NCBI GenBank assembly: GCA_907165135.1
Contig: OU015566.1
Coordinates: 9,300,001 to 9,364,000, forward strand
Origin: Oikopleura dioica
Taxonomy: Eukaryota > Animalia > Chordata
DNA length: 64,000 nt
Direction: 5' to 3'
Position 1 is the first letter of the stretch, and each line of letters starts with the position of its first letter. The notes beneath the pieces were generated by a model. The model was not told where the DNA came from. It saw only the letters and a list, made by a program, of their open reading frames with translations, and searched no databases. This document shows, piece by piece, positions 32,687 to 38,421 of the stretch. The translations under genes were made by a program, and so were the position numbers.

Positions 32687-34058
32687 TCAGGATAAATTGA
32701 GCTCTTGTTTAGCTGAAGCCAAAAGCTCTTGTATTTGCTCCTCTGAGATCGATTCTTCAAGCTCAAAGTGGCTCAAGCTCTCATGATCTGCTTCAGAAGC
32801 GGAAACAGTGGATATCCTCTCGAGTTCCATTTGAAATTCTTCGAGCATTTTGGTAATGTCATCTGAGCGCGGCTCTCTTGCGGAATCTTCCCCGTCTTCT
32901 ACGTCTTTAATCGCTAATAACTGCGTGCTTCCGGTTCTTAGACTCGCTTGACTTTGTAAGAAGCTCAATCGCGAGTCGATTTCTCGAAGGCGCTTTTCTG
33001 ACCTTGAGTCTTCGATGTTGACGGGGACGAGTGCCGTGGAGGAGAATTTGTTTTCAAGCTCGGTGTTTATTTGAGCCAATCTTTTCACGGATAATTATTG
33101 TTATAAATCGAGATTAAGCATAAAAAGCTTGAAAATATAGTTTCTTCCGTTCCTTATTTCTGTATCAGTATTTTTCTCTTCTTCATCTTCCGTGGCCAGA
33201 ATCGCTTCCAATCTATCCCTTTCATTTTTTGTCAAAATGTCGCCTGACGCGGCGAGTTCTTTGTTTCGCTCAATGAAGTTCGCCCTCTTTTCAGATCGCT
33301 CTAAAAGACGCGCTAATTCTTCGTCCTCTTCTTCCCCCAGAAGGGATTCTACTTTGGTTGGAACTGCTTGAGCCCCCTCCTCGAGAACTTCAGTTTGGTA
33401 GAAGATCCGTTCGTCCACATCCGTCATGTTTGATTCTAAATCATACATTTATCACTAGGGCTACCACATAAAATTACTCGAAAAATTATACATAAATTAT
33501 CACCAATTACCAACTAACATATCTACCTGAAGAAGAGGCGGAAATAAGATCCCTTGGTGTTCTGTGACTTCCCGAACCATCTCTTAATTTGCCCTGTTCG
33601 GAAGAAGAGCCCGCTTCGAGTTGGTGCACCAGGTCAGGGTATTCTTTAAAATACAAATCTTCCAGCACAGAAACACCCTTTTTGCCCAACAAATGCCGAA
33701 GCTTGTAAAAGCCTTCAGCATTTTCTTTTCTCAAAGTCTCAGTTTCCTCACGAATCTGCATCTGTCGCGCTCGTAATTCAACAAGAGTCAAATCATTTGA
33801 CTGAATCTTTGCTAAATTGCTACTTTGATTGAAATTCTAAAGGATTATAAAATTACCCAGGCCGCGTTTGAGTTTTTGATCTTCTTCCGATTCAAAGCTC
33901 TTTTTCTCCTTGCCCGATTTTGATCGTCTCGATTTTCTATCTCCACTAGATCTGACTGTATCCTCGCAATCATCGACTGGAATATTCAATTCGCGAGGCG
34001 GTTCTGGGGACAGAATTTCCATCGAACGAAAGGAACTTACACTCTCCCGTCCATTCAT
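32687..34058 (-). CDS. FSIP1: Fibrous sheath-interacting protein 1-like
   Basis: NFIERNKELA...ERDRLEAIL, RLAQINTEL, RLREIDSRL and ISEEQIQELL match the FSIP1 pattern. Confidence 0.75.
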
Positions 34059-34103
34059 TCTAATAAAAAGAAGTTGAGACAACTTTTACTTTCGGACGAG
34101 ATT

Positions 34104-36603
34104 TTAGTTCATGTCTCTTTTAAAGTTATGAATATGCATCAAAAGCTCTGGCTTTCCAAGCTGGACTGCAACATCGGCCAAACTGGCGAGAAGTTTTCCA
34201 ACGTCGGGTTCAGAATACTTCATCCCGTTTGTAGTGCGCTTGAAGTTTTCGCGAAGCGTAAATTGGTCTGGACTGTCCAAAAACTCTTCTTGCCAGAGGT
34301 ACTTTTTCTCTGCCTGGGCGAAGGAAATTTCATTATTGGTAAGTTGATGGATCAATGGAGCGACTTCGTTGACATTAATCCGGAGTTGAGTGAGTGTGTC
34401 ACGATCCCGGAGAGAAACTTTAATAAGCTTTCGCAAATTGTCGACTGTTGAAATAAATCATAATTTTTGAAAAGCTTTCCTGTGGCAGGAGAGTATCTGA
34501 AGGTATCATAATCGATGACAACCCCATACGGAACTCCAATTTCATCAATCAAACTATACTTTCTGCCGATAGTTTTTCCTCCAGTGTCTGACCGATAATC
34601 AACATTCAAAGCGGACAGTTGATCACAAATTAATTTTGAAATAGAATGAGCTTTTTCATCCAATTCTTTGATGTTGACAATCGTCATAACGGAAGTCTTG
34701 TATGGTGCAAGAGCGGGCTAAAGTACGAATTTGAAAATCAATGAGATGCTGGAAACATACTGGAAAGGTGAAGAACTTTCTCCCATCAACTTCTCTCTGC
34801 TGAAAGTTGTGCTCAAGAAGCGCAACTAGAATCCTTCCAAGACCAAAGGACGGTTCAATGACTTCAGGATAAAAAGACTCCACTTGAACATTTCTGATTT
34901 CTTCTTTTATCAATAGTTCGTTTTTCGCAACTGAGACGCCCTCGATTTCGATAAAATCAGAATCATCTTCTGATATTCTTTGAATCTGCTCCTGGTTCAT
35001 GCTCTTGACGAATTTGAGTACTTCCGGTGTCTTTTTGAACTTTTTCGGAGCCTTGACTTTGATTCCATAGATTTTTACCGGTTTAGGTTCTGTTAGCTGC
35101 CTTTCTGCCATCAGACTTGTTCCACTCGCCTCAACGTGATTTTTAAGATCATAAGAGCCACGATTAGCCAATCCTCCACACTCTATCCAGCCCTGCCGTG
35201 TCATTATTTCCAAATCCCAGCAATCTTTAGCATAATGCGCAAGCTCGTGTTCCAGGTGCTGTCTGAATCTGATCTTCGACTGATCGATTCCGAGAGTCAT
35301 CAGAAATTGAAAAGTCTTGACCAGATATGATGCTAAAATTGGCGAGCTAACAATCCCAGACTGAAGAATCTCATCGACTTTGAGCGCTTGAATGCTACGA
35401 CCGCTTGTTTGAGCATCTCTCGAAAGAACAGGCAATACTTGCTCAAGCTCTGGCGAATTTAATTTGATATCATCGTCTTTAGGATCGTAGAAATGCTGCA
35501 ATTCCATCATCTGAAACTCTCGGCAACGTAGTAGGCCCCCACTAGCTTTGATCTCATTTCGAAATGATGTTCCAATTTGAGCGACTGAAAATGGCAAGTT
35601 TCCGTTATTGTGATGGAGTATCCTTGGGAACACTGTGTACACGCCTTGACTTGTTTCCGGCCGAAGAAAACCGAAATTATCACCACTTTCGTCCGGTCCA
35701 AGTTTGCAAGAAAACATCAGCTTGAAATTCGTCGGCGCTGAGAAAACCCCTTCGCCGAAATATTTCCTCAGTAGTTTTTCAATGACTGAATGGTCTGGCG
35801 ATTCCACCAACAAAAGATCTTCTTCAAGCTCTTTTGCGGAGAATTTATTTGAAGATCTTTCTTTCTCGATCTTTGAAGAAAGCAGCTGATCAACTCTGAA
35901 AAATTCTCCAGTTTTGATTTCTTTCACCATCATATCGGCAAATTTTTCGGTGTGGCCAGATCCTTGAAGAACTTTCTCGGGCGTCATGATTGCCGTGTCA
36001 ATTTCAAAAACAGTTGGCTTGCCATTTACGAAGATTTTTTTCCATGCATTGATGACGTTATTCTTCAACTTTGTTCCAAGCGGCCCAAAGTCGTATAATC
36101 CCGCTCCTCCGCCATAAATCTCTCCACTTTGAGCATAAATAAACCGGTTTTTAATAGTTTGAACGAAGCCAGCGGAGTCGAAGAAGTCGTCAGCCAGAAG
36201 AATTTCGCGTTCAAGGTCTTCGAGTTCCTTTTTCAATTTCTTTAATATCGTTACTTCTTCTTTTACGTCCGGATCATTTTTTAACTTCATGGATTTTATC
36301 TTCTCTGCTTGAGTTTTAATATTTTCTTGAGTTGGGCCGAGCTGTTGCCGTACTCGCTCTTGGCCTTCGATCGTCTTCAAAAAGTCTTCAAACTACTAAT
36401 TTCTTACTCGAAAGAAATTCGTCTACTAGAGCATGAAAACCTTCCCATAAGTCGAACCTCTTCTGTCTACGCAAAGCCTCAAGCTCTCTCCTTCTCGCCT
36501 CACCTTCAAGAACGACTGCTTTTGAATTTTGTGGAGTCACCGCTTCGAATCTTCTAGCGGATGTGCCAAGAAGTCGCCTGATTCCGACATTATATTTGTA
36601 CAT
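34104..36603 (-). CDS. GARS: Glycyl-tRNA synthetase (eukaryote-type alpha2, WHEP domain), divergent, with N-terminal mitochondrial presequence and ~50-aa C-terminal extension
   Basis: IYGG.AGLYDFGPLG, LRPETSQG, FRNEI, AHYAKDCWD, GWIEC, IEPSFGLGRI, DEIGVPY and SLRDRD. Upstream exon MYKYNVGIRRLLGTSARRF. Confidence 0.92.
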
Positions 36604-36715
36604 TGTCTGAGCCACAAATCTGTATAAATTTGAATGAACACTAAAATTGTCATTGGAAAGGAAAAAGTTTATTTTTTCACTAGGAATGCTGACAGTGTGA
36701 TGGCAGAGTGTGATT

Positions 36716-38421
36716 TTAAAAGCGCATAGATAGCGCAGTGGCAGTTTGGGTTCGAGATCCACCAGTTCGCTTTGCCTATTTAGTAAATTTAGGTAAAAGA
36801 GGGAAAATTAAGAAAAATGTTACCTTTGTTTCTGTTTCTTCGGAGAAAAACGCCTTCCACAGCCGAAGAGTTTCATCTTCGCCAAGTGTGCAGACGTACT
36901 TTCCGCAGGGTGACTGACTCGAACAGAGAATTCGACCATCGTGTCCATCGAAATCCGTCATGTGCGTAAATTTTGGGTACTTCCAGAGGCGAAGGACATT
37001 ATTCGGATATCCGTGACAAGTGATGATCTCTCGCAGCCGCTCATTCCAGTGGATTCCGCTCACCTGGCACTCAGTATCGACATCGAGCACTTTCTGGCCG
37101 GTGTTGCCGTTCCAGATTATCATTTTCTTGCAAGCAGCGCCTTTTTATGATCAGAATTACGCCAATATCATGCTTAACTCACCTCCTCCGGATGCGAGCA
37201 ATTGTGGTTTCCATGGACACCACTGAACAGCTTTGACTCCAGCTTGGTGCTCCTCAAGTTTATGCATCGGTTCGTTGAATGAGCTGCCGATGTCGTTGCT
37301 CCACAATCCTATGACATTGTCGATGCCACCAGACGCGAGAAGACGTCCATCAGGAGACCAGCTCAATCCGGAAACTTCTTCAGTGTGGACCTAGAAAATC
37401 AACAATTTAAGGAGAAGACAACAAAGACTCACATTGAATTTGGATAAAAATGGATTGGGCTTTCGCACATCGTAATTATGAATCTCTCCTGATTTGGATC
37501 CGCAAGTAAGGAGCCAGGGAACATCGCCCTGTCCAACAGCGATGGACGATACTCGAGCAGCGTGGCCTCTCATTTTTCGAAGACTCTGCATCTCTGTCGC
37601 ATCCCAAACATGAGTTCTGTTGCGACTATCTCCAAACGAAATGTTGCACTCGTCGATCCACTTGATAGACGTCACCTTTGTGTTCTCTTCTAGTGAACAC
37701 AACTCACTAGAATTTCACGGTTCTGTTTAATCGAAAAATGAAGGACTTACTTGATCTCGCTCGTTTCCGCGTTCCACATAAAGATCTGATTCGCCAGAGC
37801 AACCGCAATGATATTATTCTCTCCCCAATCGAGTATGTTGATGTTGAAATCCTTCTCGACATTTGGGGCATCGAGGATCTTGTCGACGGAAGTCTCGACG
37901 TATCGTATCGATGTTTTTGCTTTGGTGCTCTTTTGCGCAGAAAAGACGAGTTTGCTTCCGTAAGCGGAGCCGGGCATCATTTTCGGCTTGTTTCCGTACG
38001 AGAGAATTCCTCGCTAATAAATGATCAGATTTGACTTTTCAAACAGCGTTACCTGAGTGTTGTTGGCCGCAACACTTCCAATAGTGGCCAACAAGTCCTT
38101 CTCCTCCTTGTCAATCGGCGTCTGATTGCTCAAAGTCATCTCGCTCATGAGAGCCGAGTAGTCCGCATCTGCCCCCAACTTCGGCATAAATCTATCGCCG
38201 CCGGTGCCACGTGAAGGTGACTTTGAAGCGCTTCTGCTGCGATTCTTCTCAGATGATTTCTTCGAGTGGTTGAGGCCTCCCTTCGATGTATTCAGGGTCG
38301 AGTTATTCATCGAGTTGTTTTGCATGGCCTTGTTCTTTGCATCGCGCCGAGCGATTCGACTGTCTTTGTTGATTTGGCCATCAAGTCGCAGCTTATTTTC
38401 CATGTCGTGATACAGAGACAT
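36716..38421 (-). CDS. CDC20: CDC20/fizzy APC/C co-activator (WD40), divergent
   Basis: N-terminal MSLYHDMENKLRLDG, C-box-like DRFMP, RGILSY, KILDAP, WD40 repeats (GHAARV, LASGG.DN, VKAVQWCPW, LLASGGG, CHGY..N...W, GHDGRIL, DETLRLW). Inferred C-terminus ...ALSMRF*. Confidence 0.92.

Follow-up and report, generated by a model that had tools for sequence, protein, structure and literature searches.

The gene described here encodes a glycyl-tRNA synthetase (GlyRS) and lies on the minus strand, at positions 34104-36603, of a stretch of 64,000 nucleotides from the genome of the larvacean Oikopleura dioica (GenBank assembly GCA_907165135.1, contig OU015566.1, positions 9,300,001 to 9,364,000), which is called the window throughout. 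Its product is most likely a GlyRS dedicated to the mitochondrion of O. dioica. This mitochondrial-type (mt-type) enzyme is a paralogue of the canonical GlyRS of animals (GARS); its gene is maintained by selection, and the enzyme is probably active.

The aminoacyl-tRNA synthetases (aaRS) of O. dioica have already received attention. According to the article by Klirs et al. 2024 (Genome Biol Evol 16:evae181, PMC11384887), this species has lost most of its mitochondrial aaRS and retained those for Gly, Phe and Met, and it possesses two aaRS-Gly, a cytosolic and a mitochondrial one, where other chordates have one. Its mitochondrial DNA (mtDNA) yielded tRNA-Met only and no tRNA-Gly, and AGA and AGG (AGR) codons are in use and read as Gly in its mitochondria. 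The duplication of the appendicularian aaRS-Gly and a link to the AGR=Gly code were proposed in the same article, and two later mitogenome papers on Oikopleura added no tRNA-Gly. Oikopleura retains the deviant code though its mtDNA holds only tRNA-Met. The mt-type GlyRS gene, coding for one of just three mitochondrial aaRS kept, provides an obvious handle on the way in which AGR codons are decoded there.

The paralogue, the duplication and the suggested link to the code having been published in 2024 (PMC11384887), the present work is mostly a confirmation in these respects. What it adds is a list of the invariant residues that have been replaced, the demonstration that purifying selection has acted between cryptic species, an orphan but conserved module at the C-terminus, and the observation that ascidians handle the same code with a single canonical GARS. 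Residue-level divergence, an analysis of selection and the C-terminal extension were not found in the available text of that article; the residue list and the accompanying data indicate which mutants and substrates could be used in a biochemical assay.

Identity and domain organization

By its sequence, the gene is a eukaryote-type α2 class IIa GlyRS. Exon 2 alone aligned with the human GARS structures (2q5h/2pme) with an E-value of 1.9e-114, over a region spanning both the WHEP and catalytic domains, and Pfam returned matches to tRNA-synt_2b (E 3.8e-11) and HGTP_anticodon (E 3.9e-07). The anticodon-binding domain aligned with human residues 547-672 (E 4e-23) and was modelled by AlphaFold2 (AF2) with values of 85-98 for the predicted local distance difference test (pLDDT). 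The Pfam match to WHEP was weak (18.3 bits vs a cut-off of 32.5 bits), and the region concerned, residues 75-113, aligned with the WHEP helices of the human enzyme. Motif 2 (FRNE) and motif 3 (SFGLGR) are preserved and aligned to human R277/E279 and to human motif 3, respectively. The glycine pocket is likewise preserved (RPETSQG, MMELQHF and VIEPSFG), and so is the ELAHYA lid. Human E245, E296 and E522 are taken here to be the three conserved Glu residues of the pocket, and AHYA to be the lid. The original prediction, which was made from the DNA letters alone, had placed a GlyRS gene at 34104-36603, with its catalytic anchors retained. Both points were correct, the ATG standing at 36603 and the stop codon at 34104-34106 on the minus strand, with FRNE, RPET, EPSFG and AHYA all aligned.

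The Norwegian orthologue and purifying selection

The top database match of the protein was P0001, the glycine--tRNA ligase of O. dioica from Norway (GCA_000209535, FN653028.1), with 72% identity over the full length. The order of genes is conserved with the Norwegian locus on the same strand, INTS5 and a CDC20-like WD40 gene being followed by the GlyRS gene. The window's own GlyRS protein was not found in the database searched, and four RNA runs with the same species label (X2 and X5-X7) matched the window, over positions 33800-37300, at only 90-95% identity, with overhanging ends of the Norwegian type. For these reasons, the window represents a different cryptic O. dioica lineage.

Between the two GlyRS genes, the proportion of differences at synonymous sites (pS) reaches 0.76, which means saturation, and the proportion at nonsynonymous sites (pN) is 0.148. 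The resulting pN/pS ratio amounts to 0.19 for the whole gene and stays <0.3 whichever region is considered. Purifying selection acts on the gene, and on its C-terminal tail as well.

Duplication of GARS within the tunicates

A cytosolic-type GlyRS, P0024, was found in O. dioica from Okinawa (OKI2018_I69 chr2 g4471; locus L003, 6001-10417), which shares 39% identical residues with the window gene and 53-56% with ascidian GARS. In a tree built under the LG+C20 mixture model, the mt-type clade is nested inside the tunicates (99/98) as the sister group of the larvacean cytosolic GlyRS (100/97), and its stem measures 3.68 changes per site vs 0.16 for the cytosolic stem. The approximately unbiased (AU) test rejected a placement outside the tunicates (p-AU 0.012). 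A duplication confined to O. dioica, with the mt clade joined to P0024, was not rejected (p-AU 0.137), so that within the larvaceans the duplication may be early or late. Five rare residues are common to the mt-type and larvacean cytosolic copies only, vs 0-2 in controls, and both types of copies possess the tail motif QDDW/QEEF..P, in agreement with the position of the clade in the tree. The claim of the original prediction that the gene is a duplicate is consequently borne out by the paralogue P0024, by the sister placement in the tunicate phylogeny and by the two aaRS-Gly reported for O. dioica by Klirs et al.

Two observations concern the cytosolic-type sequences themselves. The annotation of P0024 is devoid of the motif-3 stretch (VIEPSFGIGR...) that occurs in P0121 and P0122, probably due to an exon skipped in the gene model, with no real loss. 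P0121, a cytosolic-type larvacean GlyRS, corresponds to an uninterrupted open reading frame of 754 amino acids (L002, 28-2292) on a 2346-nt Logan contig of SRR27994921; it bears about 76 extra N-terminal residues ahead of the WHEP domain, and Pfam gave no significant match in its residues 1-95.

Leader sequence and compartment

The first 19 residues of the window protein contain five Arg/Lys and no Asp/Glu, as expected from the original prediction of an acid-free and basic N-terminus, and their helical moment is 0.72. The leader of the Norwegian orthologue has the same character, with a conserved R-F-(E/Q)-A-V stretch. Again as predicted, the next in-frame Met, Met87, falls within the WHEP match, and it is the sole further Met of the first 160 residues. 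From these features of the N-terminus, we infer that the enzyme would be imported into mitochondria.

The distribution of leaders and starts among the tunicate sequences follows a simple pattern. In the ascidians Phallusia, Styela and Clavelina, GARS displays the classical dual-start arrangement, consisting of a basic leader and then an internal Met ahead of the WHEP domain. Depending on the sequence, the larvacean cytosolic copies start right at the WHEP domain or bear another N-terminal module, always without a leader, and the mt-type copy possesses the leader-bearing start only. Such a partition between the copies looks like the subfunctionalisation of a dual-targeted gene. The earlier claim that the enzyme serves mitochondria only is probably right, taking into account the presequence-like leader kept in Norway and the leaderless cytosolic copies.

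The idea that the window gene is the sole GARS of the genome, serving both compartments by means of an alternative 5' end, is scarcely conceivable and was rejected. It could draw on Met61 of the Norwegian copy, which stands just ahead of the WHEP domain, but this Met is not conserved in the window gene, O. dioica possesses a separate GlyRS of the canonical kind (P0024, locus L003), and Klirs et al. (PMC11384887) count two copies.

Replaced residues and C-terminal extension

The divergence of the mt-type enzyme was scaled against 226 further GlyRS from eukaryotes, the alignment of which contains 113 columns that are at least 97% invariant. The window gene departs from 19 of these 113 columns and the Norwegian orthologue from 18, with 17 replacements common to both, as compared to 1 change in the cytosolic copy of O. 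dioica, 0-1 in ascidians, and a background with a median of 0 and a maximum of 8. Expressed in the human cytosolic numbering, as deduced from pairwise alignments, A247S, F251Y and N253V adjoin the glycine-binding Glu245, P282A and R283S belong to the motif-2 loop, E298Q is an additional replacement, and L565M, P566T, R606L and T631S are located in the anticodon-binding domain, where R606L converts the invariant Arg of YARTDE to Leu. The part of this domain encoded by exon 3 also displays a 4-amino-acid insertion, the change of SVLPLS to SVMTIV and that of SSGSIGRRYARTDE to TGGKTIGRKYSLIDE. In class II enzymes generally, the motif-2 loop faces the acceptor end of the tRNA; the structural role of the residues replaced in the present enzyme is one that we infer.

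All four motif changes listed in the original prediction are present, namely ETAQG to ETSQG, ISPRSG..VREF to IKASGG..CREF, GCADR to GLANR, and IGRRYARxDE to IGRKYSLIDE. The Cys of RCREF also occurs in the cytosolic larvacean copies, so that it is not peculiar to the mt-type gene, and the Asn of GLANR is confined to the lineage of the window, Norway having GLADR. As to the relaxed anticodon recognition that the prediction had read from such changes, the replaced residues of the anticodon-binding domain do no more than suggest it. Together with those of the motif-2 loop, they would fit a shift in tRNA specificity and would be equally compatible with a co-evolution or a relaxation within a fast-evolving mitochondrial system.

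The C-terminal extension, predicted to comprise about 50 residues, exceeds the C-terminus of the closest cytosolic relatives, the larvacean enzymes, by 52 residues and the end of the anticodon-binding domain by 64. It is 89% identical to that of Norway, with a pN/pS of 0.13, and was modelled by AF2 as three helices (pLDDT 56-85) following the well-modelled anticodon-binding domain. Searches in Pfam and the ESM Atlas, completed with a word search, gave only two O. dioica-like ENA fragments.

Extreme divergence coupled to a novel and conserved C-terminal module might be expected from a GlyRS-like protein that has become catalytically inactive or moonlights in another function. This explanation is very improbable and was rejected, since the FRNE of motif 2, the GLGR of motif 3, the positions of the glycine-binding Glu residues (RPET, MEL and IEPS) and the AHYA lid are all retained, and 94 of the 113 near-invariant columns are intact.

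Origin and probable role of the mitochondrial-type enzyme

The mitochondrion-dedicated enzyme probably arose as follows. The ancestral tunicate GARS would have been a single gene with two starts, serving two compartments, which underwent a duplication on the way to the appendicularians. One of the copies would have dropped its leader and remained canonical, to become the cytosolic enzyme, and the other would have retained only the leader-bearing start, evolved very fast along its stem and later come under purifying selection. In the course of this evolution, the mitochondrial copy would have kept all of the residues necessary for glycine activation, had its presumed tRNA-reading surfaces, the motif-2 loop and the anticodon-binding domain, rebuilt, and acquired its conserved helical C-terminal tail. 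The present-day enzyme most likely glycylates glycine tRNAs inside a mitochondrion that lacks tRNA genes of its own for them, and these should include whichever tRNA reads AGA/AGG as Gly.

Some points weigh against this interpretation. In the searches, the Okinawa proteome gave the cytosolic type only and the Norway proteome the mt type only, so that the occurrence of both copies in one annotated proteome rests on Klirs et al. As the mt-type clade sits on a very long branch, any placement in the tree is less secure, and the group submitted to the AU test was chosen after the tree had been seen. Finally, the RNA runs, which come from a different lineage of O. dioica, aligned only to the last exon, a conserved one, of the gene upstream and not to the GlyRS gene.

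The original prediction had designated the enzyme as the synthetase for the tunicate AGR=Gly code. In this form the claim was too broad, since ascidians share the code and possess one canonical GARS (0-1 changes). The code alone therefore needs no special enzyme, and any link between the two can only be specific to appendicularians; restricted in this manner, the link is possible. It is also possible, though on balance rather unlikely, that the gene encodes an ordinary subfunctionalised mitochondrial GlyRS devoid of any new specificity, which would charge imported standard tRNA-Gly, its divergence reflecting a relaxed constraint in the fast mitochondrial system of Oikopleura and the AGR codons being dealt with elsewhere. 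The ascidians, for which the canonical enzyme suffices, speak in favor of this explanation, together with the complementary loss of leader and start, which neutral subfunctionalisation leads one to expect, and the extreme evolutionary rate that Klirs et al. (PMC11384887) infer for the O. dioica mitochondrial genome. On the opposite side, 17 replacements at sites that are otherwise invariant became fixed and were afterwards preserved in two lineages with saturated synonymous sites. This pattern, with its concentration of replacements in the motif-2 loop and anticodon-binding domain, looks like a functional shift and not like drift.

What is peculiar to Oikopleura is the loss of the mitochondrial tRNA genes, so that any AGR-reading tRNA either has so far escaped detection in the mtDNA or is imported. 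In the latter case, a tRNA with a UCU anticodon must not receive glycine in the cytosol, which would explain the presence of two enzymes that differ in tRNA specificity. It may be proposed, as a tentative and doubtful extension of the reading in terms of a mitochondrion-dedicated enzyme, that the remodelled synthetase attaches glycine to a UCU-anticodon tRNA that is encoded in the nucleus and imported, this tRNA being the cytosolic tRNA-Arg(UCU) itself or one dedicated to the purpose. If true, the codon reassignment would reside in a synthetase specific to the compartment and not in any mitochondrial tRNA gene, and the canonical GlyRS of the cytosol would need to reject the UCU tRNA in order to protect the cytosolic Arg codons.

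A more radical and still less likely suggestion is that of an AGR specialist, charging the UCU-anticodon tRNA only, the tRNA-Gly that reads GGN codons being charged by another route. The replacement of the invariant Arg of YARTDE and of the LP that follows strand 1 of the anticodon-binding domain would suit such an enzyme, as would the rank of aaRS-Gly among the only three mitochondrial aaRS retained. Nevertheless, no UCU-anticodon tRNA with a Gly identity is known from the mtDNA of O. dioica, as far as the available text of PMC11384887 goes, and the cytosolic GlyRS shows no visible leader that would allow it to enter mitochondria and serve the GGN tRNAs.

Gene structure and neighbouring genes

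The compact GlyRS gene is built from four exons (Table 1) and its product amounts to 779 amino acids, or to 774 if the alternative intron 1 is used, the difference consisting of five linker residues. With the alternative intron, exon 1 would end at 36445 before a GA donor, which is the choice made in the Norwegian annotation, and the donor context TGG/GAAG/GTTTTCAT is conserved in the Norwegian locus L001. Both options preserve the reading frame in the window as well as in the Norwegian locus. Introns of the G*-AG type are typical of Oikopleura. Two other donors considered for intron 1, at 36503 (GTGAGG) and 36407 (GTAAGA), were rejected because the GEARRRELEALRRQKRFDLW stretch is conserved coding sequence in Norway.

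Table 1. Features of the GlyRS gene in the window. Positions are those of the window.
Feature	Positions	Strand	Remarks
Exon 1	36441..36603	-	Start codon, presequence-like leader and Arg/Glu-rich linker; located by tblastn of the Norwegian orthologue P0001; translates without stops
Leader, codons 1-19	36547..36603	-	Acid-free, basic, amphipathic; ends RRF/EA; putative mitochondrial presequence
Intron 1	36386..36440	-	55 nt, GT-AG, phase 1; alternative 36375-36444, 70 nt, GA-AG, phase 0
Exon 2	34761..36385	-	WHEP-like pair of helices (about 36210-36326), then the complete catalytic domain of class II, insertions 1-3 included (about 34764-36173)
Intron 2	34718..34760	-	43 nt, GT-AG; position common to the Norwegian gene
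Exon 3	34480..34717	-	Initial two thirds of the anticodon-binding domain (class IIa); Pfam HGTP_anticodon, alignments
Intron 3	34418..34479	-	62 nt, non-canonical GA-AG; donor context ACAG/GAAAGCT also in the Norwegian locus
Exon 4	34104..34417	-	Rest of the anticodon-binding domain, C-terminal extension, stop codon
C-terminal extension, 64 aa	34107..34298	-	Predicted helical; most conserved part of the protein
Candidate spliced-leader acceptor TTTATACAG	36620..36628	-	16 nt upstream of the ATG; read from the sequence

The Norwegian locus also possesses an AG acceptor, 8 nt upstream of the ATG. Combined with neighbours on the same strand at a distance of about 50-110 nt, the AG acceptor suggests an operon with spliced-leader trans-splicing. 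The next gene downstream on this strand, looked at over 34040-34103, has its apparent ATG at about 34052, following an AG acceptor (TTATTAG), about 50 nt past the GlyRS stop codon; the corresponding gap in Norway is 41 nt. Upstream lies a CDC20/Fizzy-like gene, the last coding exon of which (36716-36776, minus strand, ending ...LSMRF, with the stop codon at 36716-36718) is near-identical to that of the Norwegian locus. A motif of 25 nt in its 3' untranslated region, TCTGCCATCACACTGTCAGCATTCC (36683-36707), located before AATAAA (36668-36673), is near-identical in Norway too and may represent a regulatory element. This similarity, over 36683-36776 of the window and 5889-5960 of L001, contrasts with the saturation of the adjoining synonymous sites. 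ARAGORN found zero tRNA genes in the window, and Rfam gave zero matches in 33800-37300.

Comparison with known glycyl-tRNA synthetases

The closest known relative of the window gene is the mitochondrial aaRS-Gly of Klirs et al. (P0001), which is the same member of the family. The two genes are orthologues, with neighbours, leader, tail and replaced residues alike, and differ in that the window gene comes from another lineage, synonymous sites being saturated between them.

With the canonical GARS/GARS1 of animals (human, Ciona, Phallusia, Styela, Clavelina), a single gene that uses two translation starts to supply cytosol and mitochondrion alike, the window gene has in common the α2 class IIa layout, comprising a WHEP-like region, a catalytic core that bears three insertions and an anticodon-binding domain of the HGTP type, as well as the catalytic residues. 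Unlike canonical GARS, it possesses a single start attached to the leader, 19 changes in the 113 near-invariant columns (0-1 in ascidians), a weak WHEP domain, a 4-amino-acid insertion in the anticodon-binding domain and 52 extra C-terminal residues. The larvacean cytosolic GlyRS (P0024, P0121 and P0122), its sister group in the tree, share with it the Cys of RCREF and the QDDW/QEEF..P motif, but they are only 39% identical to it, leaderless, changed in only 1-2 of the invariant columns and 52 residues shorter at the C-terminus.

Two nuclear α2 GlyRS genes in one eukaryote are likewise found in yeast, with GRS1 and GRS2. According to the available text of PMC3306390, GRS1 serves both compartments and GRS2 is nearly silent and stress-inducible, so that the yeast pair is not divided by compartment.

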